A model generated the notes under the pieces. The model made no database searches and was not told the DNA's origin. It worked only from the letters and a program-made list of their open reading frames with translations. Both the position numbers and the translations under genes were made by a program. DNA of 64,000 nt from NCBI GenBank assembly GCA_950097015.1, contig CATNEN010000041.1, positions 1,612,001-1,676,000 of the forward strand. The letters run 5' to 3'. The stretch is from Macrostomum hystrix. Lineage: Eukaryota; Animalia; Platyhelminthes. This document shows positions 7,501 through 64,000 of the stretch, in pieces (the first letter of the stretch is position 1; each line of letters opens with the position of its first letter).

Positions 7501-10500
7501 GTGTCAGAGGACTGCAGCCAGTGTTTCTAGGTGTGAAGTATTGGGTGTCAGAACACTACAGCCAGTGTTCCTAGGTGTGAAGTATTGGGTGTCAGAGGAC
7601 TGCAGCCAGTGTTTCTAGGTGTGAAGTATTGGGTGTCAGAGGACTACAGCCAGTGTTCCTGGGTGTGAAGTATTGGGTGTCAGAACACTACAGCCAGTGT
7701 TCCTAGGTGTGAAGTATTGGGTGTCAGAGGACTGCAGCCATTGTTTCTAGGTGTGAACTATTGGGTGTCAGAACACTACAGCCAGTGTTCCTGGGTGTGA
7801 AGTATTGGGTGTCAGAACACTACAGCCAGTGTTCCTAGGTGTGAAGTATTGGGTGTCAGAGGACTGCAGCCATTGTTTCTAGGTGTGAACTATTGGGTGT
7901 CAGAACACTACAGCCAGTGTTCCTGGGTGTGAACTATTGGGTGTCAGAACACTACAGCCAGTGTTCCTGGGTGTGAAGTATTGGGTGTCAGAGGACTGCA
8001 GCCAGTGTTCCTAGGTGTGAAGTATTGAAAAGTCAGAGGGCATCAGAAGTCTCTCAGAGCAGGGCATTGCTAGAAGAAGGTTGCGCACCAGAGAACCAGC
8101 AGTACGGCGTCCACCCAGATCACGAGGTTGTTGGTCAAGTGCAGATTCACGGGACTCCTGAAGAACTGTTTCAGGCCGGCAAAAATGCTGGGGCCGTCGC
8201 TCAGCAGGCAGAGGCTGACGATGTTGATGATCACCAGGCTGGTGGAGCTGAACAAGCTCAGGCAGTACATCGCAGTCCTCAGCGTTGCGTCATCCACCAT
8301 GAGCATGAGTAGCAGGCAGCAGTACGCCAAGGTGAATACGAAAGACAGCAGGGTCCAGTGCACCTTATTGATTGCCCCTGAGTCAGCACGGAACCCCCGC
8401 CTCATCCTCCCGTTCAGGAGGTCCGTGGTTGGCAGCTTCAGCCCGCTATCCAGCGAAGCTTTGTTGGCAGCGAAGCTATCCTTGGCGTTGCTTCTATCGA
8501 TGACGCCAACCTTTTTCCAGAGGTAATGATTTTGTAGCGTCGCCTTACCTGCATAGAGCACCCGTTTATAATTCAGCTCGCCGCAGATGCCCCAGTCTGG
8601 ACTGACAAGCCGGAGGTCCCTATCATAGCAGCCATCGAATTTCATGAATTTAATTTCATTACAGAAGCCTGACTGCAGGGGCGAGGAGCAGCGCGTCACG
8701 TTTCCCGCCCCGCCGCTGTAGAACCCGAAGCTCTCCAGCAGCACGATGGCCACGAATACACCCTCGCTTGCCACAACCATGTTCGGGACAGTCCTGAGAG
8801 CCGACATCAGCATGATGGCCACCCCGATGCCTGCGGTGTAGATTGAGCAATTAAGTGCATGGCTCACCTGCTTGCCACATCATCTCCTCCCTCACCTGTC
8901 TGCTCCTCCCTCACCTGTCTGCTCCTCCCTCACCTGTCTGCTCCTCCCTCACCTGTCTGCTCCTCCCTCACCTGTCTGCTCCTCCCTCACCTGTCTGCTC
9001 CTCCCTCACCTGTCTGCTCCTCCCTCACCTGTCTGCTCCTCCCTCACTTGTCTCCTCCTCCCTCACCTGTCTGCTCCTCCCTCACCTGTCTGCTCCTCCC
9101 TACCTGTCTGCTCCTCCCTCACTTGTCTCCTCCTCCCTCACCTGTCTGCTCCTCCTCACCTGTCTGCTCCTCCCTCACCTGTCTGCTCCTCCCTCACCTG
9201 TCTGCTCCTCCCTCACCTGTCTGCTCCTCCCTCACCTGTCTGCTCCTCCCTCACCTGTCTGCTCCTCCCTCACCTGTCTGCTCCTCCCTCACCTGTCTGC
9301 TCCTCCCTCATTGTCTCCTCCTCCCTCACCTTGTCTGCTCCTCCCTCACCTGTCTGCTCCTCCCTCACCTGTCTGCTCCTCCTCCCTCACCTGTCTGCTC
9401 CTCCCTCACCTGTCTGCTCCTCCCTCACCTGTCTGCTCCTCCCTCACTTGTCTCCTCCTCCCTCACCTGTCTGCTCCTCCCTCACCTGTCTGCTCCTCCC
9501 TCACCTGTCTGCTCCTCCCTCACCTGTCTGCTCCTCCCTCACCTGTCTGCTCTTCCCTCACTTGTCTCCTCCTCCCTCACCTGTCTGCTCCTCCCTCACC
9601 TGTCTGCTCCTCCCTCACCTGTCTGCTCCTCCCTCACTTGTCTCCTCCTCCCTCACCTGTCTGCTCCTCCCTCACCTGTCTGCTCCTCCCTCACTTGTCT
9701 CCTCCTCCCTCACCTGTCTGCTCCTCCCTCACCTGTCTGCTCCTCCCTCACCTGTCTGCTCCTCCCTCACCTGTCTGCTCCTCCCTCACTTGTCTCCTCC
9801 TCCCTCACCTGTCTGCTCCTCCCTCACCTGTCTGCTCCTCCCTCACTTGTCTCCTCCTCCCTCACCTGTCTGCTCCTCCCTCACCTGTCTGCTCCTCCCT
9901 CATCCTGTCTGCTCCTCCCTCACCTGTCTGCTCCTCCCTCACCTGTCTGCTCCTCCCTCACCTGTCTGCTCCTCCCTCACCTGTCTGCTCCTCCCTCACC
10001 TGTCTGCTCCTCCCTCACCTGTCTGCTCCTCCCTCACCTTGTCTCCTCCTCCCTCACTTGTCTGCCTCCTCCCTCACCTGTCTGCTCCTCCCTCACCTGT
10101 CTGCTCCTCCCTCACCTGTCTGCTCCTCCCTCACTTGTCTCCTCCTCCCTCACCTGTCTGCTCCTCCCTCACCTGTCTGCTCCTCTCTCACTTGTCTCCT
10201 CCTCCCTCACCTGTCTGCTCCTCCCTCACCTGTCTGCTCCTCCCTCACCTGTCTGCTCCTCCCTCACCTGTCTGCTCCTCCTCACTTGTCTCCTCCTCCC
10301 TCACCTGTCTCCTCCTCCCTCACCTGTCTGCTCCTCCCTCACCTGTCTGCTCCTCCCTCACCTGTCTGGCTCCTCCCTCACCTGTCTGCTCCTCCCTCAC
10401 CTGTCTGCTCCTCCCTCACCTGTCTGCTCCTCCCTCACCTTGTCTCCTCCTCCCTCACCTGTCTGCTCCTCCCTCACCTGTCTGCTCCTCCCTCACCTGT

Positions 10501-12775
10501 CTGCTCCTCCCTCACTTGTCTCCTCCTCCCTCACCTGTCTGCTCCTCCCTCACTTGTCTCCTCCTCCCTCACCTGTCTGCTCCTCCCTCACCTGTCTGCT
10601 CCTCCCTCACCTGTCTGCTCCTCCCTCACTTGTCTCCTCCTCCCTCACCTGTCTGCTCCTCCCTCACCTGTCTGCTCCTCCCTCACCTGTCTGCTCCTCC
10701 CTCACTTGTCTCCTCCTCCCTCACCTGTCTGCTCCTCCCTCACCTGTCTGCTCCTCCCTCACTTGTCTCCTCCTCCCTCACCTGTCTGCTCCTCCCTCAC
10801 CTGTCTGCTCCTCCCTCACCTGTCTCCTCCTCCCTCACTTGTCTCCTCCTCCCTCACTTGTCTCCTCCTCCCTCACCTGTCTGCTCCTCCCTCACCTGTC
10901 TGCTCCTCCCTCACTTGTCTCCTCCTCCCTCACCTGTCTGCTCCTCCCTCACTTGTCTCCTCCTCCCTCACCTGTCTGCTCCTCCCTCACCTGTCTGCTC
11001 CTCCCTCACCTGTCTGCTCCTCCCTCACTTGTCTCCTCCTCCCTCACCTGTCTGCTCCTCCCTCACCTGTCTGCTCCTCCCTCACTTGTCTCCTCCTCCC
11101 TCACCTGTCTGCTCCTCCCTCACTTGTCTCCTCCTCCCTCACCTGTCTGCTCCTCCCTCACCTGTCTGCTCCTCCCTCACCTGTCTGCTCCTCCCTCACT
11201 TGTCTCCTCCTCCCTCACCTGTCTGCTCCTCCCTCACCTGTCTGCTCCTCCCTCACCTGTCTGCTCCTCCCTCACCTGTCTGCTCCTCCCTCACCTGTCT
11301 GCTCCTCCCTCACCTGTCTGCTCCTCCCTCACTTGTCTCCTCCTCCCTCACCTGTCTGCTCCTCCCTCACCTGTCTGCTCCTCCCTCACCTGTCTGCTCC
11401 TCCCTCACTTGTCTCCTCCTCCCTCACCTGTCTGCTCCTCCCTCACCTGTCTGCTCCTCCCTCACTTGTCTCCTCCTCCCTCACCTGTCTGCTCCTCCCT
11501 CACCTGTCTGCTCCTCCCTCACCTGTCTGCTCCTCCCTCACCTGTCTGCTCCTCCCTCACTTGTCTCCTCCTCCCTCACCTGTCTGCTCCTCCCTCACCT
11601 GTCTGCTCCTCCCTCACTTGTCTCCTCCTCCCTCACCTGTCTGCTCCTCCCTCACCTGTCTGCTCCTCCCTCACCTGTCTGCTCCTCCCTCACCTGTCTG
11701 CTCCTCCCTCACTTGTCTCCTCCTCCCTCAACTGTCTGCTCCTCCCTCACCTTTCTGCTAGTTGGTGAATGGGCTAGTTGGTGAATGGGCTAGTTGGTGA
11801 ATGAGCTAGTTGGTGAATGAGCTAGTTGGTGAATGAGCTAGTTGGTGAATGAGCTTGTTGGTGAATGAGCTAGTTGGTGAATGAGCTAGTTGGTGAATGG
11901 GCTAGTTGGTGAATGAGCTAGTTTGTGAATGAGCTAGTTGGTGAATGAGCTAGTTGGTGAATGAGCTAGTTGGTGAATGAGCTAGTTGGTGAATGGGCTA
12001 GTTGCTGAATGGGCTAGTTGGTGAATGAGCTAGTTGGTGAATGAGCTAGTTGGTGAATGAGTGAGTTGGTGAATGAGCTAGTTGGTGAGTGAGTGAGTTG
12101 GTGAATGAGCTAGTTGGTGAATGGGCTAGTTGGTGAGTGGGCTAGTTGGTGAATGAGCTAGTTGGTGAATGGGCTAGTTGGTGAATGAGCTAGTTGGTGA
12201 ATGGGCTAGTTGGTGAATGAGCTAGTTGGTGAATGAGCTAGTTGGTGAATGAGTGAGTTGGTGAATGAGCTAGTTGGTGAATGAGTGAGTTGGTGAATGA
12301 GCTAGTTGGTGAATGGGCTAGTTGGTGAATGGGCTAGTTGGTGAATGAGCTAGTTGGTGAATGGGCTAGTTGGTGAATGAGCTAGTTGGTCAGGTCACTA
12401 GCTGTCATTCTCACCTTTGATAGCGGGACAGAAGCCCCAGCAGCGCAGCGTGCCAAACCGAGTCAGCTGGCCCACGGCAGCCAGCAGGACGACAGTCGGC
12501 AAACCGAAGGTCATCATGACGGTGAAGTAGGCCACAGAGAAGGACAGTCCGCCGTACTTCAGGCAGTAGCTGAAGTACAAGTAGATGCCGGAGCTGCGGA
12601 ACAGGCAGGAGCTATAGCCAAGGACAAAGTCGAGCGTGTTGCGCCAAGCCCGAGCACCTGGCTTGCTGGCCTGCGCGAGCTGCTCGCAGGTGCAGTGCTG
12701 ATAGCCGCCTTTGAACTCATGCGGCAGCTGCTGGCTGCAAATGGCCTCCAACAACTGAGGGCCGCCACCGGTCAT
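4555..12775 (-). CDS. Atypical SLC6 (sodium:neurotransmitter symporter family) transporter-like protein, about 688 aa; exons 12775-12415, 8830-8089, 6030-5459, 4946-4555
   Basis: Translated exons align by eye with the SLC6 architecture: RAWRNTLDFVLG (pre-TM1), YGGLSFSVAYF..GLP....AAVGQ (TM2), WGFCPAIKG|IGVA, a Cys-containing EL2, IWVDAVLLVLW|NTGCASGEIIGMTKMN (TM6), GGSAVYNFLY (TM10) and YPWW (TM12). The summed exon length of 2067 nt is divisible by 3, and all introns are GT-AG. Confidence 0.85.
4980..5440. repeat. GACT-based about 22-bp repeat (4980-5095) and ATTG-rich low-complexity tract (about 5318-5440) in SLC6-like intron 3
   Basis: GATTGGCTGACTGACTGACTGT x about 5; degenerate (ATTG)n. 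Confidence 0.85.
6018..8027. repeat. 44-bp minisatellite, about 46 copies, filling SLC6-like intron 2 and containing its 3' splice site
   Basis: Period 44 (GCCAGTGTTC at 6021, 6065, ...). On the minus strand the unit reads CTGACACCCAATACTTCACACCCAG|GAACACTGGCTG. Confidence 0.97.
8885..11755. repeat. 19-bp pyrimidine-rich minisatellite, about 150 copies, in SLC6-like intron 1
   Basis: Units CTCCTCCCTCACCTGTCTG / CTCCTCCCTCACTTGTCTC. They explain the three about 970-aa LLPHLSAPPSPVCSS ORFs. Confidence 0.98.
11757..12390. repeat. 16-bp minisatellite, about 39 copies, directly abutting the 19-bp array
   Basis: Unit GCTAGTTGGTGAATG(A/G). Confidence 0.97.
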
Positions 12776-28937: not shown

Positions 28938-31692
28938 TCAGTTGAACACAGGGTTGTCCCGGCTGACATTGAACTGGCTGTGGAACACGTTCGCGTTGCC
29001 GGGTACAGGTGAGCCGCGGTAGGCAAGCTGCGGGAAGGCCCGGCCCTGAGTTGACACGGATGAGCGGCGGGACCAGGCCGTGCTGTCTGCAGCTGCTGTT
29101 GTGGTCAGTTCAGGTGGAGGACATTGGACATTGTTGAAACTATTGGCTACTCTCACTTCACTCGAATACCCTGAGCCCATCCATTCACACAGCCACCCTC
29201 AGCCCATCCATTCACACAGCCACCCTCAGCCCGTCCATTCACACAGCCACTCTCAGCCCAACCATTCACACAGCCACCCTCAGCCCATCCATTCATACAG
29301 CCACTCTCAGCCCAACCATTCACACAGCCACCCTCAGCCCATCCATTCATACAGCCACTCTCAGCCCATCCATTCATACAGCCACCCTCAGCCCATCAAT
29401 TGACACAGTCACCCTCAGCCCATCCATTCACACAGTCACCCTCAGCCCATCCATTCACTTTCCTAATTTTCTAAACAACATGTACAGAACACTCACACAC
29501 GCATTTATCTACTTCTGAGTAGTTCATACAGAACTTTAATCTAAAATTTTTGATACGTACCCACATCGTCCGTCCAGCTTTTTCGTCCGACGGACTGCTG
29601 ATAGCTCTGGTAGCCAAGACCCGGCTGCTGCTGTTGTTGAAGCGGCAGCTCGTCAATCGGGATCTGCCGGGTCACCGTCCACTCCTCCACCTTGAACGGA
29701 GTGCTCATTCGCGTCTCCACGCCCTGGTCCTCCTTTCGCTCCAGGAACTCGCGCAGGTGGTCGTACCGCCCGGCGCCCTCAACCGGCTGTGTCGTCGCGC
29801 TGTGGTATTCGGTCCACTCTTCGAAGTTAAGGTTCTCCACGCTGCCGATCGAATGCCGTCGATCGCGACGTTCACCGCCGCTCCTGATGGCGCGGGTCTC
29901 AAACGACCGGGCGCGCCGGGCCGGGTTCGAGCTGCCGACGGCCTCTGCGGAATCCAACAGGCGCCTGTAGCCTTCAATCGAGTCTTGACTGTTGACGACC
30001 TGCCGCGGCGACGGAGAAGATCGTCCCTTGCCGGACCTCCGCGTCTCGTAGCCCGTGACGGCCTGCACAGCGGGAATTCGCTCGTACACAGTCCACTCCT
30101 CTTTGAGGAAGACTTCTGGCGTCTTTGACTGATCGCGACTCCCAGCAGCTGCCTGACGAAGTCGCTCCTTTTCTTCGCTAAATTCTTTACGATTTTCCTC
30201 TTCCACTTCGTGACGTTGACGACGCTCTTCTTCCTCACGACGCCGACGACGCTCTTCTTCCTCGCGGTGCCGACGACGCTCTTCTTCCTCGCGATGCCGA
30301 CGACGCTCTTCTTCCTCGCGATGCCGATGATGCTCTTCTTCCTTGCGACTTCGACGCTTCTCCCCCTCCTCGTGATATCCGCGTTGCTGGACATCTTCCG
30401 TTTTTCGTGTATTTCTGTCCTGCTTTCCTGAGTTTTCGTCCAGGTAACGTCGATAACCAACAACCGAGTCTGAGCTATCGTAGTGCTGCAGCAGCTGCGC
30501 TGGTGCAGGGGGTGATTGTGACCTCGGCCGTACCTGCTGATGCACCACCGGCACCGTCTCGTACACTGTCCATTCCTCCCGTCGGAAAATATCAGGAGTC
30601 TTATTGGCCACTTCTCGCCTCCTGAGCTCTTCTTGGCGCCGTTGCCGCTCTTCCGCCTCCTTGAGGTCACGCCTCTCGCGTTTCTCCTCTTCCGCCTTGC
30701 GCCTTCTGTCCCGCTCGGCCGCCTCAGCCCAGAGGTGCCTCTCCCGGTCCTCTGCGTCAGCCATCCGCCTCCGCTCCACCTCCTCCGCTTCCTCCCGACG
30801 CCGACGCTCCGAGGACTCGCGCTGCAGCCGCCGACGCTCCGCCTCCTCCGCCTCCTCCCGACGCCGACGCTCCGAGGCTTCACTCTGAAGTCGCCGCCGC
30901 TCCGCCTCCTCCGCCTCTTCCTTCTTCCGCCTTGCTTCGCGCCTGTCTATGGTGTCGGCCACCGGCAGAGTCTCGTAGACGGTCCACTGCTCGGTCTGCT
31001 CGGCGGGGCGCAGGTCGCCTCTTGAACCCGTCGGACTGTCCCGCTCCAAGATGGTGCGCGAGACGTAGCGCGTCTTCTTCGTGACAAAACGCGGCTGCGG
31101 GGGTCGCAAGTCCCGGCTGCTGTTGTACTGCACTGGCGAGCCGTCCGAGGGCTTCTGTTTACCGGCGGCCAGGTTTGAGTCGGACTGCAGCGGGCTCGCT
31201 GCATCATCATCATCGTCCACTGGAGTCTGGACGATCCGGATTCTGGCCGGCTTGCCGATCGGAGTGAAGCCTAAGTTGGTCGGTGAAGATTGCTTCGGCG
31301 ACGGGGCACGCGGCGGCTGCTGCAGCTTCAATGGCTGCGACAGCTGCGGTTGCTTCGGCTGCTGCTGCAGTGGTGCATGCTGAGGCGACGGCGTTAACGC
31401 CAGTTGCGGCCGTGGCTGCGGTTGCGGCGGTGGCTGCGGAGGCGGCGGTGCCGATGGCTGGGTCCGTCTATCGGACGGCAGGCGGCGAACTGGCACCGGG
31501 ACCTTCTTAAGAGACTCGTTCGAAGCCTGGCGCTGAGAGAACAGGCTGGCCAAAGAGCTCACGTGGCCCTTCTTGATGCCGGCCTCGGGTTCAATGTGGC
31601 TTTGCTGCTGCTGCTGCTGATGCTGCCGACGCAGAGTCTGGTTGTTCATGACGTCCTCCGCGGTTTTGAAAGCTGTTTTGGATTCTCTAAGT
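28938..31692 (-). CDS. Uncharacterised, largely disordered E/R-rich protein with repeated EEWTVY motifs; large exon 31692-29561 (first ATG 31649) spliced to about 29086-28938; possible further upstream exons
   Basis: A non-repetitive 2.1-kb GC-rich ORF with protein-like content (poly-Q, Pro-rich stretch, ER/K helices). It is bounded by a TTTTCAG acceptor at 31693 and a GTACGT donor at 29560. A phase-compatible last exon ends at TGA 28938. No recognisable family. Confidence 0.75.
29174..29458. repeat. 27-bp minisatellite, about 10 copies, in the intron of the EEWTVY-motif gene
   Basis: Unit CAGCCCATCCATTCACACAGCCACCCT. Confidence 0.95.
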
Positions 31693-31738
31693 CTGAAAAT
31701 AATTTTTAAGAAAGGAGCCGAACAGATTCTCGCCCGCA

Positions 31739-31972
31739 ATGGCAGCCGCAGCTGCCTATTTAGCTGCCGCGGTCTTCGCCTTGTGCCTGTCGGTTCCCAC
31801 GGACCCCGCCCTGGCGGCTCGCAGCCGCTTGTCGCCTCAGCTCAACTTATTCGGCCTTTATTTGCGAAAAGCTGCCGAGTTTTTACTGCCGTTGGAATCA
31901 GAGGCAATAAAAGCTGCGGGCGAGCAAACTTTTGCCCGGGAAACTCGGCAAAATGGGACTCTTTTGTCCTAG
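31739..31972 (+). CDS. Possible small secreted protein (77 aa) with signal-peptide-like N-terminus
   Basis: ATG in gcaATGg context; MAAAAAYLAAAVFALCLSVPTDPALA is hydrophobic with an AxA end. No homology recognised. Confidence 0.25.
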   Translation: MAAAAAYLAAAVFALCLSVPTDPALAARSRLSPQLNLFGLYLRKAAEFLLPLESEAIKAAGEQTFARETRQNGTLLS

Positions 31973-34985: not shown

Positions 34986-35716
34986 TGAGCAGAAGGGCAG
35001 GCGGGCTTGTGCGGGATTTCGACCCAGTTTCCAGGCCGTTTTGCTGCGGCTCGAGATTTAGTTTTCCGGGCCAGCCGAGCGCAGTCTCTCAGAAGCAGCA
35101 GATGCCAGTGCTGCCAGATATGAGTCAATTTATATGCAAGCGCACAGATGTCACTTAGCCCCAGTATCAGCCCCAGATAAGGACTAGGAAAAAGTGCAAA
35201 TCACTGGGTGAAAAATTTTCCCACTTGAACCTAGAAAACTTATTTGACTGTTCACCCGGGAATTCTCAGTGATCCCCATTAGTCTCTCAAATTACTGTCG
35301 GACCCGGCAAGGAAGCGGCAGGTGATACTTTGCTGCCAGGCACATCTGCCAGCCTCACAACCCTGCGCCCTCGTGCACTTTTCATGTTCAGCCGGTCTGT
35401 AGTCAAGCCTAGTCAAAGAGGATTCCAGTCTTCCCAACTTTCTGCTGCTCACGAAACAGAGCTCTACACACCGCAACTTTTTCTATTGTTCCCTTTGTTC
35501 TGAATCTTTCATTGTTCTACAGAATTTTCAATGAATAAAAGACTGCAGAAGCAAAGTGGAGAATCAAAGTTTTGTCAATCTGCGCGAGTTACAGGCGGGT
35601 AAACTCGATTGGTTTGTCAGAGATTGAATTGGGAATATTTTTTCTTCATGTCTAAAACTTTTGTTAACACACCGGCTATAGAAGTGACGACTTGTGGAAA
35701 TACCTGCAAGCTGCTT

Positions 35717-38011
35717 CCAAGCTTCTAACTTCCAGCTTCTAGCTTCCAGCTTCTAGCTTCCAGCTTCTAGCTTCCAGCTTCTAGCTTCTAGCTTCCAGCT
35801 TCTAGCTTCCAGCTTCTAGCTTCTAGCTTCCAGCTTCTAGCTTCTAGCTTCTAGCTTCTAGGTTCCAGCTTCTAGCTTCCAGCTTCTAGCTTCCAGCTTC
35901 TAGCTTCTAGCTTCTAGCTTCCAGGTTCCAGCTTCTAACTTCCAGCTTCTAGCTTCCAGCTTCTAGCTTCCAGCTTCTAGCTTCCAGCTTCTAGCTTCCA
36001 GCTTCTAGCTTCCAGCTTCTAGCTTCTAGCTTCCAGCTTCTAGCTTCTAGCTTCCAGCTTCTAGCTTCTAGCTTCTAGCTTCTAGCTTCTAGCTTCTAGC
36101 TTCCAGCTTCTGGCTTCCAGCTTCTAGCTTCCAGCTTCTAGCTTCTGGCTTCCAGCTTCTAGCTTCCAGCTTCTAGCTTACAGCTTCTAGCTTCTAGCTT
36201 CTAGCTTCCAGCTTCTAGCTTCCAGCTTCTAGCCTCTAGCTTCTAGCTTCTGGCTTTCAGCTTCTAGCTTCTAGCTTCTAGCTTCTAGCTTATAGCTTCC
36301 AGCTTCTAGCTTCCAGCTTCCAGCTTCCAGCTTCTAGCTTCCAGCTTCTAGCTTCCAGCTTCTAGCTTCCAGCTTCCAGCTTCCAGCTTCTAGCTTCCAG
36401 CTTCTAGCTTCTAGCTTCTAGCTTCTAGGTTCCAGCTTCTAGCTTCCAGCTTCTAGCTTCCAGCTTCTAGCTTCCAGCTTCTAGCTTCCAGCTTCTAGCC
36501 TCTAGCTTCTGGCTTCTAGCTTCTGGCTTCCAGCTTCTGGCTTCCAGCTTCTAGCTTCCAGCTTCTAGCTTCCAGCTTCTAGTTTCCAGTTTCTAGCTTC
36601 CAGCTTCCAGCTTCCAGCTTCTAGCTTCCAGCTTCTAGCCTCTAGCTTCTGGCTTCTAGCTTCTGGCTTCCAGCTTCTGGCTTCCAGCTTCTAGGTTCCA
36701 GCTTCTAGCTTCCAGCTTCTAGCTTCCAGCTTCCAGCTTCTAGCTTCTAGCTTCCAGCTTCTAGCCTCTAGCTTCTGGCTTCTAGCTTCTGGCTTCCAGC
36801 TTCTGGCTTCCAGCTTCTAGCTTCCAGCTTCTAGCTTCCAGCTTCTAGCTTCCAGTTTCTAGCTTCCAGCTTCCAGCTTCTAGCTTCTAGCTTCTAGCTT
36901 CTAGCTTCCAGCTTCTAGCTTCCAGCTTCTAGCTTACAGCTTCTAGCTTCTAGCTTCTAGCTTCCAGCTTCTAGCTTCCGGCTTCTAGCCTCTAGCTTCT
37001 AGCTTCTGGCTTTCAGCTTCTAGCTTACAGCTTCTAGCTTCTAGCTTCTAGCTTCCAGCTTCTAGCTTCCAGTTTCTAGCTTCCAGCTTCCAGCTTCCAG
37101 CTTCTAGCTTCCAGCTTCTAGCCTCTAGCTTCTGGCTTCTAGCTTCTGGCTTCCAGCTTCTGGCTTCCAGCTTCTAGGTTCCAGCTTCTAGCTTCCAGCT
37201 TCTAGCTTCCAGCTTCCAGCTTCTAGCTTCTAGCTTCCAGCTTCTAGCCTCTAGCTTCTGGCTTCTAGCTTCTGGCTTCCAGCTTCTGGCTTCCAGCTTC
37301 TAGCTTCCAGCTTCTAGCTTCCAGCTTCTAGCTTCCAGTTTCTAGCTTCCAGCTTCCAGCTTCTAGCTTCTAGCTTCTAGCTTCTAGCTTCCAGCTTCTA
37401 GCTTCCAGCTTCTAGCTTCCAGCTTCTAGCTTACAGCTTCTAGCTTCTAGCTTCTAGCTTCCAGCTTCTAGCTTCCAGCTTCTAGCCTCTAGCTTCTAGC
37501 TTCTGGCTTTCAGCTTCTAGCTTACAGCTTCTAGCTTCTAGCTTCTAGCTTCCAGCTTCTAGCTTCCAGCTTCCAGCTTCCAGCTTCTAGCTTACAGCTT
37601 CTAGCTTCCAGCTTCTAGCTTCCAGCTTCTAGCTTCCAGCTTCTAGCTTCCAGCTTCTAGCTTCCAGCTTCTAGCTTCCAGCTTCTAGCTTCCAGCTTCT
37701 AGCTTCCAGCTTCTAGCTTCCAGCTTCTAGCTTCCAGCTTCTAGCTTACAGCTTCTAGCTTCCAGCTTCTAGCTTCCAGCTTCTAGCTTCCAGCTTCTAG
37801 CTTCCAGCTTCTAGCTTCCATCTTCCAGCTTCCAGCTTCCAGCTTCTATCTTCCAGCTTCCAGCTTCTAGCTTCCATCTTCCAGCTTCTAGCTTCCAGCT
37901 TCTATCTTCCAGCTTCCAGCTTCTAGCTTCCAGCTTCTAGCTTCCAGCTTCTAGCTTCTAGCTTCCAGCTTCCAGCTTCTAGCTTCCAGCTTCTAGCTTC
38001 CAGCTTCTAGC
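35717..38011. repeat. 7-bp satellite (GCTTCTA/GCTTCCA), about 325 copies, with higher-order structure
   Basis: Continuous 7-bp periodicity over 2.3 kb; rare variants recur at 483-bp spacing. Confidence 0.98.
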
Positions 38012-38437
38012 TCAATGCCAGCTAACTGGGCAATCGTCAGCAATCAAAAGGGGAAGATTTTCCATTTTTAGAAGCGACTCTGTGAAGAACGCGCGGGCCT
38101 TGTCCGAATTCCGTGACAAGCAGCGCGCGGGTGGCTGAGACAGATAAGAGAGCCAAGAAAATCAGGGAGTTCCGGCGCCTCCTCAATGGGAAGTTCGGAT
38201 TAGGGAAAATCGTGTTTTTTAGCGGTGACTCGGCAGGCCTTTGAACCCCTGAGCTCGGGGCTCCAGCTTCCTGGGGATCCGGGATCGGGCAGGGTAGCAG
38301 ACAGCCCCGGCCCGCAGGAAATTAGGGCCTGGGCTGCTTCCTTTCATCCCCTGTGCATCTCTTTCTCCCAACTGCAATTCTCCCCACTGCCCTGCTTCAC
38401 ATTCCTGCTCTCCTCTGTGTGGTATCCATTGTCTCAA

Positions 38438-41073: not shown

Positions 41074-42516
41074 TCAGGCGGTTTCAGAGGCGGCGCCAGC
41101 GCAGCAGAGAAGCGACACGGCTGCGGAGGACTGCGGCCTCTTTTGCGAGTTCAAGGAGGCTGCCGCGGCTGCGGGAGCTTCCGATGCTGAGGCCACTGCT
41201 GCTGCCTCGGTGACGCCTTCAGCACCGCCGTTGCACCTGGCAGCCAGGTGGGACTGAATGGCCAGGCCCAGCAGGTCCGGGTCGATGTCCGCGCCGTAGA
41301 CGTCCCAGGTCTGGCCGTTCTCGTCGAAGCTGACATCCCGCGGAGGCGGCGGTCGCGACAAGCCCGAAGGTCCGGGCACGTCGACGCTGCACCGATCGAA
41401 GCTCCGATGGCAGGCGTCGCAGAGGGAACCGCGCCGGCCTGATGACGGCGTCTGCGATGAAGGTGACGACGGCTGTTGTGGGTGCGTTGGCGAAGGCGTG
41501 TGACGCGGTGGCGGTGGCGACCGACGTTGCTTAGGCGTTGCGGTCGGCGAATCTGTTGGAGAACTTGACGCTGCTGCAGCCGGAGCTGATGGGGCGGTGG
41601 CTGCCGCGGCCGAAGATTGCCCTGCTGCAGCCAAGTGATGAGGCATGACCAGCCGGTTTTGCTTCGGGTCGATGAAGCAGACCTGCTTGCGCACTGGCTG
41701 CTTCTGCTGGCGATTCGGCGATGAGGTCAGGCAGGGAGGCAGCGGCGGCTCGGACGGTAGCGAGATGACTTCGATCAGCTGGGCCATGTGGTTCTGCTGG
41801 ACTGACTTCTCGAACTGCTGGATGCTGGCGATGATGGAGCGGATGTCGGAGTCCGAGCACACGATGCCACCGCCGTCGCCCGCAGCAGCCGGGGCAGCCG
41901 TCGCAGGCGGCGAGGTTGCTGCCGCTCTTTGAATCGACGTCGGCGCGTGGGCAAGCAACACATCGGGCGGCGGCGGCCAGTCCGCCACGGAGACGTTGCC
42001 GCAGTTGGTCTGCACGGCGTGGCGCTGAATGCGCAGCTTCAAGTTCCGCATCTTGTCCAGCAGCTGCTCTGAGCGGGACATCTCCCGGGCGCTGGGCTGC
42101 AGCAACCGCTCCAGGGTTGGATTGCGGCCCGCCGGCTTCCTCCGCGCCTGCTGGCCACCGCCGGAGTTCTGGCGCTGGTGCGCCGAGGTCAGCGGGCGCT
42201 GCTGGGACGATGAAGCGGAAGTTTCCGGCTCTGGGCAAGACACAGAGCGCCGAGCCGCCCTCGGCTGCTTCTGGCGCTGCTTTCGTAGCTGCTGCTGCTG
42301 CTGCTGTAGCTGCTCCTGGTGCGAGTGCTGCGGCTGCAGCTGGTGAGGAAGTCGCGGCTTGGGCAGAGGAATCAGCGGGCTGACTATGTAGGCGTTCATC
42401 TTGTCGGCAAAGTCGGTGTCGTGGTGGATGGAGGTCCTGCGACCAGTCCGGGTGCTTATGATCGTCACGACCGGGCGGCCCTGAAGCGGCTCCGCCATGG
42501 CCTCTTCGTCAGTCAC
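41074..42516 (-). CDS. GPRIN: GPRIN-like protein (G protein-regulated inducer of neurite outgrowth C-terminal domain), single exon, 480 aa
   Basis: The C-terminal RDVSFDENGQTWDVYGADIDPDLLGLAIQSHL matches the GRIN_C signature (RDVxWDExGxTWEVYGAxxDxExLGxAIQxHL). It is followed by a terminal Cys-Cys as in GPRINs; the rest is low-complexity. Confidence 0.8.
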   Translation of the reverse strand: MTDEEAMAEPLQGRPVVTIISTRTGRRTSIHHDTDFADKMNAYIVSPLIPLPKPRLPHQLQPQHSHQEQLQQQQQQLRKQRQKQPRAARRSVSCPEPETSASSSQQRPLTSAHQRQNSGGGQQARRKPAGRNPTLERLLQPSAREMSRSEQLLDKMRNLKLRIQRHAVQTNCGNVSVADWPPPPDVLLAHAPTSIQRAAATSPPATAAPAAAGDGGGIVCSDSDIRSIIASIQQFEKSVQQNHMAQLIEVISLPSEPPLPPCLTSSPNRQQKQPVRKQVCFIDPKQNRLVMPHHLAAAGQSSAAAATAPSAPAAAASSSPTDSPTATPKQRRSPPPPRHTPSPTHPQQPSSPSSQTPSSGRRGSLCDACHRSFDRCSVDVPGPSGLSRPPPPRDVSFDENGQTWDVYGADIDPDLLGLAIQSHLAARCNGGAEGVTEAAAVASASEAPAAAAASLNSQKRPQSSAAVSLLCCAGAASETA

Positions 42517-51716: not shown

Positions 51717-54700
51717 CTAGTCGTACATGTCCTGATCCGAGCCGGACATCCGGGCGTCCTCCTTTTCTTCCATCTCCGCGCGCCGATCGTCATCCAACTG
51801 AGGAAAAAAATCTGGTGGCACGTCCTGAAGCTGGACGGAGGGCGCGTGGCTCAACTGTTTGAGATTGTCGTGCACCACCATGCGGATAGAGTCCAGGTAG
51901 GTCTTCGTGTTCATGTTCTCCTGCTTGGTGCTGAGGTCCGGGTGCAGCACAAAGTCAGGCGAGAAGAAGTCGATATATTCGGAGAACGGCAGATCCGGCG
52001 CCATTTCGTCCTCGCGGTCCAGCAGGCAGGCGGTCTCGTAGGTCCAGCAGCGGGCCACGTTGCGCACAGTATAGCCGCCGCCGCCCAGCACCAGGGTGGG
52101 CACACCGAAGCTCTTGACGAAGCGCACGCACTCTCCGTGGCCGCGAATGCTGAGATTGAACACACCCAGCCTGTCGCAACCAAGGGAGTCCGCGCCGCAC
52201 TGCAGAACCACCACCGAGGGCCGGTAGAAGCTGAACACGTCCTGCACAACCGGCTTGAAGATTGAGGCGTATAGTTCGTCGTCGATGCCCTCCTTCAGCG
52301 GCACGTTGACGCTGTACAGGCGGCCAGCGTCGACGCCGATTTCGTACATGTCGCCGGTGCCAGGGAAGAACAGGTTGCCGTACTTATGGAATGACACGGT
52401 CATGACCCGGTCGGTCAGGTAGAAAGCCTCCTGCACTCCGTCGCCGTGGTGAATGTCGATGTCGATGTAGAGAACGCGGGGATGGTATTTTAGCAGCTCC
52501 AGGATGCCCAGAACAATGTCGTTGATGTAGCAGAAGCCGGAGGCTTCGTACTTCTTCGCGTGGTGCAGGCCGCCGGACCAGTTGATGGCGAATTCGCATT
52601 GCTAGGTGGTAAGCAGTGGAGCTTTGAGAGTCAGACTCATTCATGCCTACTGTTAGTAGGCTGACTCAGTCAGGTTGTCAGACTCATTCATGCCTACTGT
52701 TAGTAGGCTGACTCAGTCAGGTTGTCAGACTCATTCATGCCTACTGTTAGTAGGCTGACTCAGTCAGGTTGTCAGACTCATTCATGCCTACTGTTAGTAG
52801 GCTGACTCAGTCAGGTTGTCAGACTCATTCATGCCTACTGTTAGTAGGCTGACTCAGTCAGGTTGTCAGACTCAGTCAGGTTGTCAGACTCAGTCAGGTT
52901 GTCAGACTCAGTCAGGTTGTCAGACTCATTCATGCCTACTGTTTGTAGTCTTCTTCAGTCAGGTTTTCACTCACCTTGTTGTTAATCAGCTGCGCGCCCT
53001 GTATCGATGCACCAGTGTAAGCCGAGCAGAAGTCGAAAATGCCGTCGAACACGGGACTGCGGGCAGCAGGATCGGCGGGATCATCTCCATAAAGGGAGTG
53101 AAAAGGCACAAATGTTTTTAGTAAAAAAACTAATTGGCACTCACCAGTCGTCGCCAACGTTGAACATGCTGGTGACCTCCTTGGCCACGCTGCCGATGGT
53201 CTGCGGAGAAACGCTCTCCAAAAAATGCACATAGTCCTCCGTGTGGAACAGAGCCATGTCGTGCGAGGTGGCGCAATACGGAACATAGTACTGAAAGTAG
53301 CAGGTTTGGTGAGAATGCCAACAACAATAAATATGGACACTAAGCTGGGAGCCATATCATAACAATATTCGAACAGATGAACATCTCATGCAATATTATA
53401 ACTGAGCTACTCCCATCTCAACCTGAGCTAGTCCCATCTCAACCTGAGCTAGTTCCATCTCAACATGAGCTAGTTCCATCTCAACCTGAGCTAGTTCCAT
53501 CTCAACCTGAGCTAGTTCCATCTCAACATGAGCTAGTTACATCTCAACCTGAGCTAGTTCCATCTCAACCTGAGCTAGTCCCATCTCAACATGAGCTAGT
53601 TCCATCTCAACCTGAGCTAGTCCCATCTCAACATGAGCTAGTTCCATCTCAACATGAGCTAGTTCCATCTCAACATGAGCTAGTTCCATCTCAACCTGAG
53701 CTAGTTCCATCTCAACCTGAGCTAGTTCCATCTCAACCTGAGCTAGTTCCATCTCAACCTGAGCTACTCCCATCTCAACCTGAGCTAGTTCCATCTCAAC
53801 ATGAGCTACTCCCATCTCAACCTGAGCTAGTTCCATCTCAACATGAGCTAGTCCCATCTCAACCTGAGCAGGAGCCAACTAAGCTGGAGCTAGACAGCTG
53901 TTAACCTTCAATAATGCTTCATTTGACGTGTCTACAAAAACTGAGGAACACAAAAGAGCAAGTCATGTCACTCACATCCATGGCATCAATGAGGCCATAG
54001 TTGACAATCAGGCTGTGTGTCAGACTCAGCCGGTGTGGCTTCATAGGGTGACCTGGCCCTGTATGGTCAGTGTGATACACTATAGATATTATTTAATTAG
54101 ATGAGTACATCTATTCATGTATTAACAGACCCTGCACATAGATACATTAGATACAATATTGTCCATTGGTCAATAGATTACTATGGACAATTATTTGTTG
54201 CATACAGAACATTTGAAGCTACTAAGTATCATTGTTTAAACAAAGAACTAACATGAGCATTTCTCTCACATGCATGAGCTACATTTAAATGTCTAAAAAT
54301 GAGTACACTCTTTTTGTCACCAATACAAAACTGACAAGTGCCTTAATAAAATACAGAAAGCACAAAGCAAAATTTTCTACTTTTTATGCAAAAGGCAGAA
54401 AGCAAGAATATATGCCAGAATAAAATATATGCCAGAATATTTGTATCTTGTACACATGGCCCTAAACATATTTCATTATTATAGTTAAACCAACTACAAT
54501 AAATATTGAATCCCCACTTCCAGAACTAAAATAATCATGTAAAACTTGATTAACATTTATTTTAAATAGTGCCTATTTTAATTATTGAATAACTATAATA
54601 GTATTTAGCTTCATCAGTTCAGTTAGCATGTCAGACAGTTGATTGTTAGCTATATAAGTTACAGATGACCCACAAAATTTGAAAATAAAAATTCTAAGCT

Positions 54701-57806: not shown

Positions 57807-58714
57807 ACAGCAGCACAGGAAGAACCGGTTCGATCCAGTTTGTTACAATCCCCTCGACCGGCTGTTTTCGGATCGAAGCCACGGGAGCCAGAGGTGGAAC
57901 CAACACCTACTTAGCTAGGGCAGGTGGCAATGGAGCCTTCATCTCAGTCGCCTTCATCCTGACTGCCGGCACCCAGCTGACTATCGTCGTCGGGCAGGCC
58001 GGCGGCTCGCCAAAAAACATTTATTCTGGAGGAGGCGGCGGTGGAGGCACCTTCGTGTGCAAGACAACGAATAATTTTCTGCTTAATTGCAGCTGGTGCA
58101 GGCGGTGCTAGGACATACGTTGAAACCGATAAGCCCGTGATGCATGGGATGTAATGGTAAGTATTTTGGCTCCAAGAAACTCTCTCAACAAAATTAAACA
58201 GCAGAACTATTGAAGGTCTGTCGGGAAAAGCTGGGATCAATGGCACAGGGTATCATCCTTATGGAGATCTCAGTGACTTCGGAGGAATCAATGGGCAGCC
58301 TGGCTTCCTCAATACTAGCGCTGCCTCCACCACCACAACTACGGCGGCTGCGGTGCCGGCTGGCTGGGCAAGCCCCTGAACTCCAGGCGAGGACCTGAAC
58401 CTGACGATGGCGACGAAGGCGGCGGTCTGGCCGAGGGCTGAGTCGCAGGCGCAGCTGGCAGCTCTAACACTGGCGATGGCGGTTTTGGCGGAGGGGGAGG
58501 TGGCGGAGTGACGAATCCCAAATTTTGAGCCGGCGGTGGCGGCGGTGGCTGTAACGGAGGCGGCGCTGACTTCTACACGAGCCCGGCAGGCGGCGGCGGC
58601 GGTTCCTTCTTCTCCGGTTGCGGCTTTCGCGGCACTACAGGGGGCAGCGCCCAGCAGCACGCCCCGAAGGTGCTGATTCGGCTTCTTGTGCCCCTTGGTG
58701 ACTCATGCAAATGA
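57807..58714 (+). pseudogene. Disabled gene for an ALK/LTK-type glycine-rich-domain protein (two exons, intron 58157-58201)
   Basis: It reads IQFVTIPSTGCFRIEATGARGG...GGNGAFISVAFILTAGTQLTIVVGQAGG...GGGGGGGTFV...LL/IAAGAGG, later GGCGAGW...GGFGGGGGG...AGGGGGSFF, which is the glycine-rich-domain signature. At least two frameshifts are needed (about 58086, about 58325), and there are in-frame TGAs at 58439 and 58526. Confidence 0.72.
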
Positions 58715-59969
58715 GCAGAGCCGACTTATGAAATTCTGGTTCGAACAGCTTTAGCCAACTCATGGCTTGAATTCTTGATTTCTCAAGGTTTATCAATTTA
58801 AAAAACATAAATACATGAAAATGAAACAGAACTCAAGATTCATAAAACAAAAATTAATTGTTGATATGACTCGTCTTGAGCTCTTACTCTTACTCTTGGC
58901 AGATTTAGGCATGAAAGCAGTCGGCCTAACTGGGCGCGAAATATCAGGTATGGACTCTTGACTTACTAGGCTTCGCTGCATGGCGGTCCGAAGACACAGC
59001 CGGGAGGCGGCAGTCGCCCATTCCGCTAGTCCCTGAAAGGCCCTCTTCAGCCGAGGAATAGGCTCTTTGAACTATTGAATTCTGATAGATGGAAACAAAC
59101 CTATTGGGACTTCTTCTAAACTGCAGCTTTCGACAGATTATCGGAATTATAACATTTGTGTGCTCTTTGCAGCCGTGAGATTTTAGTGCAATTAACGACT
59201 CAGCAGCCAAACTCGAAAACTTAAGTCTTAACCTCTTATGAAAATTCAGACCGCCTCTCTCCAGAACAACTAGCATTCATTGTCCCTAAAGGGCATCCAA
59301 CCGCAGATGGGAGATGAACAGCTCCACTGATGCATGGATTACCGTCTTAAAAAGTTAACGGATGGTAAAAGAAAGTCAGGGCAGCATGTAACAGACGTTC
59401 CATTTTCAGCAGGACTCTCGTGTTTTGATGAAGGCACAACTTGTGCAGAGATTGCGGCTGTCAACGTTGACTCTGGAAGTCAGCAGACTGGCAGCAGAAG
59501 AGCAGCCTATAAGCAAGAGAGAACTCATCAACCAAAATTAAACTTAAACTAAACACACGAAACTCCCCGAGTTACTAGCAAGCTTGTCTGCCTACCAGCG
59601 CATTTGCCTTCATGCTTCACTTAAAGACTCCTAAAGAATTTTGAAAAAAAGAAAAAGCTAAGGCAAATCACTACCTTTAGAATAATACGCTCGTACTTCA
59701 AGACTCAAAAAATGCGTAAGAATTTGATGAAAACGAAGTCCAGTCATTAAACAAAAAGGAAAAAAGGAAAAAGGAAATCATAACTTGAGTGTTCAAGTGT
59801 ACAAACCCCAACATAAAAGCCAACAAGAAGTCGAACACCGTCTATAGGACCCAAAATAAAAAACATAAGACAGACTGCGTCGAAAGAGCGATGAATAAGT
59901 TCCTTTTTATTATCCCACAACCACAAACTACACCGCACAAGCATGCTCAAAACAATAATATATCCAAAA

Positions 59970-62900
59970 TTATCCAAATCTAGCAAAACGGTTGCTTCTT
60001 CTCTTTCTGACATCGCGGCTCTTGCGATTGCGTCTGGCCGAGCGTCTGCGGTTACGTCTGGCGCGTCTGTTGGAGCGTCTGCGGTTGCGTCTAGCACGTC
60101 GACGGTTGCTTCTTCTCTTTCTGACATCGCGGCTCTTGCGGTTTCGTCTGGCCGAGCGTCTGCGGTTACGTCTGGCGCGTCTGTTGGAGCGTCTGCGGTT
60201 GCGTCTAGCACGACGACGGTTGCTTCTTCTCTTTCTCACATCGCGGCTCTTGCGGTTGCGTCTGGCCGAGCGTCTGCGGTTACGTCTGGCGCGTCTGTTG
60301 GAGCGTCTGCGGTTGCGTCTAGCACGACGACGGTTGCTTCTTCTCTTTCTGACATCGCGGCTCTTGCGGTTGCGTCTGGCCGAGCGTCTGCGGTTACGTC
60401 TAGCACGACGAGGGTTGCTTCTTCTCTTTCTGACATCGCGGCTCTTGCGATTGCGTCTGGCCGAGCGTCTGCGGTTACGTCTGGCGCGTCTGTTGGAGCG
60501 TCTGCGGTTGCGTCTAGCACGACGACGGTTGCTTCTTCTCTTTCTCACATCGCGGCTCTTGCGGTTGCGTCTGGCCGAGCGTCTGCGGTTACGTCTGGCG
60601 CGTCTGTTGGAGCGTCTGCGGTTGCGTCTAGCACGACGACGGTTGCTTCTTCTCTTTCTCACATCGCGGCTCTTGCGGTTGCGTCTGGCCGAGCGCCTGC
60701 GGTTACGTCTGGCGCGTCTGTTGGAGCGTCTGCGGTTGCGTCTAGCACGACGACGGTTGCTTCTTCTCTTTCTGACATCGCGGCTCTTGCGATTGCGTCT
60801 AGCCGAGCGTCTGCTGTTATGTCTGGCGCGTCTGTTGGAGCGTCTGCGGTTGCGTCTAGCACGACGACGGTTGCTTCTTCTCTTTTTGACATCGCGGCTC
60901 TTGCGGTTGCGTCTGCCGAGCGTCTGCGGTTACGTCTGGCGCGTCTGTTGGAGCGTCTGCGGTTGCGTCTAGCACGACGACGGTTGCTTCTTCTCTTTCT
61001 CACATCGCGGCTCTTGCGGTTGCGTCTGGCCGAGCGCCTGCGGTTACGTCTAGCACGACGACCGTTGCTTCTTCTCTTTCTGACATCGCGGCTCTTGCGG
61101 TTGCGTCTGGCCGAGCGTCTGCGGTTACGTCTGGCGCGTCTGTTGGAGCGTCTGCGGTTGCGTCTAGCACGACGACGGTTGCTTCTTCTCTTTCTGACAT
61201 CGCGGCTCTTGCGATTGCGTCTAGCCGAGCGTCTGCTGTTATGTCTGGCGCGTCTGTTGGAGCGTCTGCGGTTGCGTCTAGCACGACGACGGTTGCTTCT
61301 TCTCTTTTTGACATCGCCGGCTCTTGCGGTTGCGTCTGGCCGAGCGTCTGCGGTTACGTCTGGCGCGTCTGTTGGAGCGTCTGCGGTTGCGTCTAGCACG
61401 ACGACGGTTGCTTCTTCTCTTTCTCACATCGCGGCTCTTGCGGTTGCGTCTGGCCGAGCGCCTGCGGTTACGTCTAGCACGACGACCGTTGCTTCTTCTC
61501 TTTCTGACATCGCGGCTCTTGCGGTTGCGTCTGGCCGAGCGTCTGCGGTTACGTCTGGCGCGTCTGTTGGAGCGTCTGCGGTTGCGTCTAGCACGACGAC
61601 GGTTGCTTCTTCTCTTTCTCACATCGCGGCTCTTGCGGTTGCGTCTGGCCGAGCGCCTGCGGTAACGTCTAGCACGACGAGGGTTGCTTCTTCTCTTTCT
61701 CACATCGCGGCTCTTGCGATTGCGTCTGGCCGAGCGTCTGCGGTTACGTCTGGCGCGTCTGTTGGAGCGTCTGCGGTTGCGTCTAGCACGACGACGGTTG
61801 CTTCTTCTCTTTCTGACATCGCGGCTCTTGCGGTTGCGTCTGGCCGAGCGCCTGCGGTTACGTCTGGCGCGTCTGTTGGAGCGTCTGCGGTTGCGTCTAG
61901 CACGACGACGGTTGCTTCTTCTCTTTCTGACATCGCGGCTCTTGCGGTTGCGTCTGGCCGAGCGTCTGCGGTTGCGTCTAGCACGACGACGGTTGCTTCT
62001 TCTCTTTCTCACATCGCGGCTCTTGCGGTTGCGTCTGGCCGAGCGTCTGCGGTTACGTCTGACGCGTCTGTTGGAGCGTCTGCGGATGCGTCTAGCACGA
62101 CGACGGTTGCTTCTTCTCTTTCTCACATCGCGGCTCTTGCGGTTGCGTCTGGCCGAGCGCCTGCGGTTACGTCTAGCACGACGAGGGTTGCTTCTTCTCT
62201 TTCTGACATCGCGGCTCTTGCGATTGCGTCTGGCCGAGCGTCTGCGGTTACGTCTGGCGCGTCTGTTGGAGCGTCTGCGGTTGCGTCTAGCACGACGACG
62301 GTTGCTTCTTCTCTTTCTGACATCGCGGCTCTTGCGGTTGCGTCTGGCCGAGCGCCTGCGGTTACGTCCTAGCACGACGAGGGTTGCTTCTTCTCTTTCT
62401 GACATCGCGGCTCTTGCGATTGCGTCTAGCCGAGCGTCTGCGGTTACGTCTGGCGCGTCTGTTGGAGCGTCTGCGGTTGCGTCTAGCACGACGACGGTTG
62501 CTTCTTCTCTTTCTGACATCGCGGCTCTTGCGGTTGCGTCTGGCCGAGCGTCTGCGGTTGCGTCTAGCACGACGACGGTTGCTTCTTCTCTTTCTCACAT
62601 CGCGGCTCTTGCGGTTGCGTCTGGCCGAGCGCCTGCGGTTACGTCTAGCACGACGAGGGTTGCTTCTTCTCTTTCTGACATCGCGGCTCTTGCGATTGCG
62701 TCTGGCCGAGCGTCTGCGGTTACGTCTGGCGCGTCTGTTGGAGCGTCTGCGGTTGCGTCTAGCACGACGACGGTTGCTTCTTCTCTTTCTGACATCGCGG
62801 CTCTTGCGGTTGCGTCTGGCCGAGCGCCTGCGGTTACGTCTAGCACGACGAGGGTTGCTTCTTCTCTTTCTGACATCGCGGCTCTTGCGATTGCGTCTAG

Positions 62901-64000
62901 CCGAGCGTCTGCGGTTACGTCTGGCGCGTCTGTTGGAGCGTCTGCGGTTGCGTCTAGCACGACGACGGTTGCTTCTTCTCTTTCTCACATCGCGGCTCTT
63001 GCGGTTGCGTCTGGCCGAGCGCCTGCGGTTACGTCTAGCACGACGTGGGTTGCTTCTTCTCTTTCTGACATCGCGGCTCTTGCGATTACGTCTGGCCGAG
63101 CGCCTGCGGTTACGTCTGGCGCGTCTGTTGGAGCGTCTGCGGTTGCGTCTAGCACGACGACGGTTGCTTCTTCTCTTTCTGACATCGCGGCTCTTGCGGT
63201 TGCGTCTGGCCGAGCGCCTGCGGTTACGTCTAGCGCGTCTGTTGGAGCGTCTGCGGTTGCGTCTAGCACGACGACGGTTGCTTCTTCTCTTTCTGACATC
63301 GCGGCTCTTGCGGTTTCGTCTGGCCGAGCGCCTGCGGTTACGTCTGGCGCGTCTGTTGGAGCGTCTGCTGTTGCGTCTAGCACGACGACGGTTGCTTCTT
63401 CTCTTTCTGACATCGCGTCTCTTGCGGTTGCGTCTGGCCGAGCGCCTGCGGTTACGTCTAGCACGACGACGGTTGCTTCTTCTCTTTCTGACATCGCGGC
63501 TCTTGCGGTGGCGTCTAGCCGAGCGTCTGCGGTTACGTCTGGCGCGTCTGTTGGAGCGTCTGCGGTTGCGTCTAGCACGACGACGGTTGCTTCTTCTCTT
63601 TCTGACATCGCGTCTCTTGCGGTTGCGTCTGGCCGAGCGCCTGCGGTTACGTCTAGCACGACGAGGGTTGCTTCTTCTCTTTCTGACATCGCGGCTCTTG
63701 CGATTGCGTCTAGCCGAGCGTCTGCGGTTACGTCTGGCGCGTCTGTTGGAGCGTCTGCGGTTGCGTCTAGCACGACGACGGTTGCTTCTTCTCTTTCTGA
63801 CATCGCGGCTCTTGCGGTTGCGTCTGGCCGAGCGCCTGCGGTTACGTCTAGCACGACGAGGGTTGCTTCTTCTCTTTCTGACATCGCGGCTCTTGCGATT
63901 GCGTCTAGCCGAGCGTCTGCGGTTACGTCTGGCGCGTCTGTTGGAGCGTCTGCGGTTGCGTCTAGCACGACGACGGTTGCTTCTTCTCTTTCTCACATCG
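59970..64000 (-). CDS. 3' end of a very large arginine-rich repeat protein (38-aa unit, about 58% Arg), 5' end outside window; three single-base indels in the given sequence
   Basis: The repeat is open in the RRSNRRRARRNRRRSNRRARRNRRRSARRNRKSRDVRK frame and ends ...SNRFARFG-TAA (59972-59970). AATAAA lies about 60 nt downstream (59911-59906). Recurrent unit variants are mostly synonymous in this frame. Confidence 0.62.
59988..64000. repeat. Composite 114-bp/78-bp tandem repeat, about 40 units, continuing past window end
   Basis: Unit GACGGTTGCTTCTTCTCTTTCTGACATCGCGGCTCTTGCGGTTGCGTCTGGCCGAGCGTCTGCGGTTACGTCTGGCGCGTCTGTTGGAGCGTCTGCGGTTGCGTCTAGCACGAC. The short form lacks 36 bp. Confidence 0.98.

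Follow-up and report, generated by a model that had tools for sequence, protein, structure and literature searches.

The glue proteins of flatworms are known to include giant secreted repeat regions of polycationic character (PMC6410801, PMC9229212). Mlig-ap1 has a length of 5,407 amino acids (aa), with more than 3,600 residues of Lys/Arg-rich repeats located at both ends and a calculated isoelectric point above 14 (PMC6410801); the repeats are described as Gly/Arg/Lys in composition (PMC8621496, PMC6410801) and are thought to bind polyanions (PMC6410801). The ap3 protein of Minona and Theama is a separate secreted protein, in which a signal peptide precedes a GRKHS-type repeat of about 3,700 residues; it was stated not to be found in macrostomids (PMC9229212). 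In this study, a tandem array carrying an arginine-rich reading frame on the minus strand was analysed at the right end of a 64,000-nucleotide (nt) stretch of Macrostomum hystrix DNA (contig CATNEN010000041.1, positions 1,612,001 to 1,676,000), hereafter called the window. With moderate confidence, we regard this array as the 3′-terminal coding array of a minus-strand gene of an arginine-repeat family, a gene that would be intact if three one-base indels are errors and truncated at 62368 if they are real.

The array started at 59988 and continued past the window end at 64000. Anchored segmentation on the minus strand delimited 39 complete units and one terminal unit cut off after 27 nt. The complete units fell into 25 long ones (23 of 114 base pairs (bp), one of 113 bp, and one of 115 bp) and 14 short ones (13 of 81 bp, encoding 27 aa, and one of 82 bp), the short unit being the long unit minus an internal 33-bp duplicate. 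Along the array, the order of units was LSLSLSLLLSLSLSSLSLSLSLLSLSLLLSLLLLLSLLL, with a frequent higher-order period of one long plus one short unit (195 bp). A first-pass annotation of the window had given unit lengths of 114 or 78 bp, both multiples of 3; the long unit and the divisibility by 3 were upheld, and the length of the short unit was corrected to 81 bp. Translation of the long-unit consensus in the minus frame gave the 38-residue sequence DVRKRRSNRRRARRNRRRSNRRARRNRRRSARRNRKSR, with 22 Arg, 5 Asn, 4 Ser, 3 Ala, 2 Lys, 1 Asp and 1 Val, exactly the composition annotated before, and a net charge of +23 per unit from its 22 Arg, 2 Lys and 1 Asp. The short unit was translated as DVRKRRSNPRRARRNRRRSARRNRKSR. 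Between the two internal 33-bp sub-repeats, three third-position changes were silent and one codon was replaced. Blocks of units had also been duplicated, as seen in the units starting at 61315 and 60893, which were identical and had four less common variants in common.

The arginine frame read DVRKRRSNRRRARRN... and consisted of R (55.6%), N (12.2%), S (10.7%), A (7.7%), K (6.0%) and G (0.4%). It was open in four in-frame pieces of 545, 351, 136, and 315 codons, the sum of which (1,347) includes a few out-of-frame codons at the piece ends. Hence, a protein of more than 1,300 aa, as proposed in the first-pass annotation, corresponded to about 1,340 codons in the window, provided that three frameshifts are skipped; with the same provision, the net charge would be about +790 in the window, or about +0.59 per residue. 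For the last 200 residues, AlphaFold2 run with no alignment predicted two long helices with a break at a Pro-bearing short unit (mean predicted local distance difference test score 83.5, predicted template-modelling score 0.28), a prediction that we distrust given the chain charge of +0.6 per residue. The features on which the following analysis depends, within the array and in its left flank, were located as follows.

59988-64000, minus strand: tandem array of 25 long units, 14 short units and one terminal partial unit, from unit segmentation
59973-59996, minus strand: last eight codons of the arginine frame, SNRFARFG, a degenerate last unit that lacks one codon (compare SNRRRARRN)
59970-59972, minus strand: TAA stop codon of the arginine frame, read from the sequence
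59906-59911, minus strand: AATAAA, the consensus of a poly(A) signal, 58 nt past the stop codon
59850-59885, minus strand: U/GU-rich stretch (...GTCTGTCTTATGTTTTTTATTTTGG) downstream of AATAAA, at the expected site of cleavage and of the downstream element
62368, minus strand: frame break by a 1-bp insertion (plus-strand C to CC) in the 82-bp unit, from unit alignment
61318, minus strand: frame break by a 1-bp insertion (plus-strand C to CC) in the 115-bp unit, from unit alignment
60915, minus strand: frame break by a 1-bp deletion (plus-strand GG to G) in the 113-bp unit, from unit alignment
61663-61665, plus strand: TAA interrupting a rival Leu/Arg frame and corresponding to N>Y in the arginine frame, read from the sequence
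59943-62372, plus strand: rival open reading frame (ORF) of 809 aa with an ATG start, in a frame rich in Ser, Ala, Thr and Val

As annotated before, the array ended in the unique tail SNRFARFG followed by a stop codon and AATAAA, and a U/GU-rich stretch lay beyond. By sequence alone, this tail resembles a textbook 3′-end of a gene, and the minus-strand arginine frame was the only frame possessing a stop codon, AATAAA and a U/GU-rich end. This hexamer is no rarity in the A/T-rich flank, as shown by another AATAAA on the plus strand at 59855. The latter hexamer (59855-59860) and a 72-codon plus-strand ORF at 59334-59552, found after a possible splice acceptor ttttcag (about 59403-59409), may represent the 3′-end of a gene that converges on, and abuts, the putative poly(A) site of the arginine gene; no RNA contig support was found for this putative gene, and exact look-up in public collections returned no called-gene record for the 72-aa ORF.

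Variation among the repeat units was counted over all clean units and compared with the expectation from all possible substitutions. Twenty-one distinct variants were observed, of which 10 were synonymous versus 24.9% expected (p = 0.02) and 11 were located at codon position 3 (binomial p = 0.056). The four commonest variants, present in 24, 15, 10, and 7 copies, were all silent. The main recurrent replacement was R>P, with 8 copies, in short units only. No significant contrast in frequency was observed between silent and replacement variants (Mann-Whitney p = 0.17), and the copies of a variant do not count as independent events, given the duplication of unit blocks. The silent variants named in the first-pass annotation (AAC/AAT, GTC/GTG, AGA/AGG, GCC/GCT, and CGC/CGA/CGT) do exist, and R>P was indeed their main recurrent exception; the synonymous bias, however, amounted to a modest excess, weaker than had been claimed. 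The absence of AGA or CGA codons mutated to TGA, cited there as evidence for coding, was uninformative, since only 3.5% of the possible substitutions create a stop codon and about 0.7 such variants would be expected among 21. Largely borne out were the statements that the variants are nonsynonymous in the plus-strand Ser/Ala frame (13 of 15 in long units and 7 of 8 in short units) and that they create stops in a further frame, read here as DATADAP on the minus strand, as was the caution that a plus-strand frame with the same third positions limits the argument from silent bias. This Leu/Arg frame (LLLLFLTSRLLRLR) scored nearly the same as the arginine frame, with 8/15 silent variants in long units and 5/8 in short units versus 8/15 and 4/8, respectively. 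Taken together, the minus-strand arginine frame appears to be the best single reading, which the evidence internal to the array favours moderately but not decisively.

Words of the array occurred in many sequencing runs. Four of these were mapped on nt 58700-60240, namely the animal runs X1, X6, and X19 and an environmental metatranscriptome, X4; X1 and X6 are RNA by a guessed label, X19 is of an unlabelled kind, and the data of all runs are contigs, which drop rare variants and cannot prove absence. Array units were present in X1, X6, and X19 as short contigs, with summed word depth peaking at about 58,000, 16,000, and 122,000, respectively. The unique flank (58700-59947) had zero depth in X1 and X6 and none in X4, and a mostly unique flank stretch of about 1.2 kb had no run matches beyond its array part. 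A rare variant at 60144 accounted for 2.2% of the depth in X1, 3.4% in X6, and 0.07% in X19. This pattern fits a very abundant RNA or, alternatively, runs of close relatives, because DNA from the same animal would cover the flank; array depth with zero flank depth thus argues for RNA over genomic DNA of the same animal. The arginine-repeat family is therefore probably highly expressed, with the 3′-end of this particular copy lacking support.

Two further observations were made in the runs. In X19, a piece of about 50 nt matched at 58993-59043, with unlike sequence on both sides of the match, and may be a small shared or repeated element. Array words also occurred in at least 10 metatranscriptome runs of environmental samples (sediment, soil, wastewater, root, and outdoor), which belong to seven studies, the match in X4 being a 144-nt contig (60042-60185) identical to the animal consensus. 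These words may come from carry-over of a very abundant RNA, which is a guess, or from related animals in the samples.

Several observations weigh against the arginine frame of this copy being an expressed gene, and they are set out here and in the next three paragraphs together with the alternatives on which they bear. The 5′-end, with any start codon or signal peptide, lies beyond the window. Contigs carry no direction, so that the array depth fits either strand. Scoring of codon usage against five ORFs of the window did not separate the frames. Among 5.8 billion clusters (length range 300-954 aa), none was related to the 545-aa open piece; a search of 1.84 billion representatives of all lengths returned none but one match, and ESM Atlas contained nothing above 0.81. 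The scoring of low-complexity sequence in such searches is harsh. The sole match among the representatives (P0001) was rejected as spurious, being a repeat-bearing protein with QEGSHRDVA units. In addition, no Rfam family matched in 58000-64000, a conserved 32-mer of the unit had no exact match in JGI metagenome contigs, and nothing relevant was found in the literature on the repeat peptide or DNA string, Macrostomum protamine, rhabdite basic proteins or Macrostomum satellites.

The alternative that survives best, although we consider it unlikely, is a dead or silent paralogue, that is, an array born as coding sequence of the arginine family and no longer expressed or translated, with the abundant RNA derived from sister copies. 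The three indels reported in the first-pass annotation were all found in the assembly, each a singleton among the units. The break at 62368 would be the first met by a ribosome, and reading then ends at once (...RRART followed by a stop). Three frameshifts in 4 kb amount to 0.75 per kb. As a control, alignment to their own consensus was carried out for 15 further tandem arrays in the window, covering 15 kb; no 1-bp indel was found in 11 of them (8.7 kb), and 0.4 to 3.5 per kb were found in the remaining four. Because those 11 arrays had no 1-bp indel, assembly errors are unlikely to occur uniformly at 0.75 per kb, and the low rate in most arrays suggests that the indels are real. On the other hand, the four arrays with higher rates leave room for errors, and all three indels are one-base run-length changes, the kind of error made by long-read consensus. 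Two explanations are thus possible: errors that depend on sequence context, or true indels of the kind seen in non-coding arrays. Loss of expression would also agree with the RNA data: no contig was found on the tail and 3′-untranslated region (UTR) of this copy (59896-59997) in the four runs despite the huge array depth, so the check for a transcript carrying the SNRFARFG tail was negative, and the singleton variant at 60099 was absent from all four, with the consensus base instead, but contigs that lose rare variants cannot show absence. Moreover, the substitution pattern still looks constrained, which speaks against a dead copy.

A non-coding minisatellite, possibly transcribed, in which a 3-periodic composition of the (A/C)G(A/C) type and recent amplification produced the open frames as a by-product, is more doubtful. 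The window is packed with tandem arrays, and the frameshift rate of the arginine array is within the range of the non-coding ones. Openness alone says little in an array with four of its six frames open or almost open; the codon-position bias reached p = 0.056 as given above, and the silent-site statistics are marginal and also fit the plus-strand Leu/Arg frame. The lack of protein relatives in the libraries searched and the array tail without RNA support would be expected from such a sequence as well. In opposition, all three length classes (114, 81, and the 33-bp difference) are multiples of 3, most of the more than 30 other tandem arrays in the window having periods that are not; there is a silent excess, with the commonest variants all silent; the older differences between the sub-repeats are mostly silent; and very high array depth with zero flank depth was found in the two runs of guessed RNA label.

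Coding on the plus strand is highly improbable, since the Leu/Arg frame (LLLLFLTSRLLRLRLAERLRLRLA...), although sharing its third positions with the arginine frame and having silent counts equal to it in long units and similar in short units, possesses an in-frame TAA (61663-61665) and no ATG after the upstream stop, the Ser/Ala/Thr frame, although starting with an ATG at 59943, 45 nt before the array, and open for 809 codons, has residues changed by nearly all unit variants, and called-gene records contain neither ORF, as checked for the 809-aa one by exact look-up in public collections.

Returning to the arginine frame as coding sequence, the array, its frames, the stop codon and 3′ signals, the variant statistics, and the repeat abundance in the animal runs were observed directly, and coding, secretion and function are inferred. 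The gene would belong to a small local family encoding giant arginine-repeat polycations. The product would most likely enter the secretory pathway and be stored against a polyanion; after release, it would cross-link or condense polyanions, such as sulfated or carboxylated glycans, by electrostatic attraction, the role already proposed for ap3, a stand-alone polycation, and for the regions of Mlig-ap1 that are rich in Lys and Arg. Were the indels assembly errors, the gene would be intact; were they real, translation would stop at 62368 and the remaining 2.4 kb of the array would become 3′UTR. More tentatively, the family may consist of giant proteins of about 1,000 to 1,700 residues, about 56% Arg and with no detectable relatives, made at a very high level as stand-alone secretory polycations distinct from the Lys/Gly-rich glue proteins, and serving as charge-based cohesive, granule-packing or antimicrobial material. 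If so, few known large proteins would match them in arginine content, and they would be relevant to reversible underwater adhesion, complex coacervation, and the way in which cells translate and store extreme polycations. No predicted protein with this repeat was present in the two very large libraries, and gene annotation and protein databases would thus miss such genes completely. The main value of the present copy is as a second family member, and its frame breaks and missing 3′-end support have to be settled before it is counted as a gene.

The rest of the window contained both animal genes and further repeats. The former were represented by exons of a class I histone deacetylase, a GRIN_C domain, and WD40 repeats. 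The histone deacetylase exons were located on the minus strand at 51717-52436 and 53919-54080 (Pfam Hist_deacetyl, E = 1.4e-37), with minisatellites at 52630-52973 and 53402-53869 in apparent introns of this gene. A 480-codon minus-strand ORF at 41074-42516 encoded the GRIN_C domain (G protein-regulated inducer of neurite outgrowth C-terminus, E = 6e-14). A 732-codon open frame at 29541-31739, also on the minus strand, was Glu/Arg-rich, contained in-frame repeats of 27, 63, and 81 bp with EEAEEAERRR and HREEEERRR motifs and a recurring EEWTVYE, and had no Pfam match. Between and inside the genes of nt 1-54000, minisatellites with periods of 14-47 bp formed more than 30 separate arrays, some of them very long: 151 copies of a 19-bp unit were located at 8884-11759, 166 copies of a 14-bp unit at 35713-38012, and 46 copies of a 44-bp unit at 6019-8027.

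Three kinds of polycation can be compared with the array. Protamines, which are small, act in the nucleus and have no secretory leader, contain 50-70% Arg and motifs of the RRR/RRS type. The arginine frame resembles them in Arg content and motifs but differs in size and architecture, as it reads for more than 1,300 residues in repeats of 38 and 27 residues. The suggestion of a protamine-like sperm nuclear protein in the first-pass annotation is thus unlikely, the open pieces alone having 545, 351, 136, and 315 codons.

Mlig-ap1 shares with the array very long, low-complexity and extremely cationic repeats in a flatworm secretory protein, one region being C-terminal; like the array, these are hard to assemble and resist tryptic proteomics, and an interaction by charge with polyanions has been proposed for them. 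However, the Mlig-ap1 repeats are rich in Gly, Arg, and Lys, as in the published peptide SRKPRRKNRKSRKP, whereas the array has a different unit with 56% Arg, 6% Lys, and 0.4% Gly. The arginine frame is therefore not Lys/Arg/Gly-rich in the way of ap1-type repeats, and its earlier assignment as a candidate Mlig-ap1-type region was not supported, no sequence relative having been obtained; the distinction from Mlig-ap1 is drawn from published description. No exons for lectin, vWD/C8/TIL or EGF domains were found between the array and the window end, the 5′ part of the gene lying beyond 64000.

The ap3 proteins, Mile-ap3 of Minona ileanae and Tmed-ap3 of Theama mediterranea, likewise consist of a giant cationic low-complexity repeat, in which a signal peptide is followed by almost only repeat (3,700 aa in Theama) with a cohesive, charge-based role. 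The arginine frame is similarly giant and highly positive (about 1,340 codons and +0.59 per residue, only if the three breaks are skipped). In ap3, Lys, Arg, Gly, His, and Ser dominate, as in the GRKHS motif, and not Arg with Asn, Ser, and Ala as in the array. Judged from sequence features, the arginine repeat seems to be of the same kind as the ap1 and ap3 polycations, with membership claimed in neither family, and, if translated, it would extend the flatworm secretory polycations known from the Lys/Arg-rich regions of Mlig-ap1 and from ap3 to an almost pure arginine chemistry.

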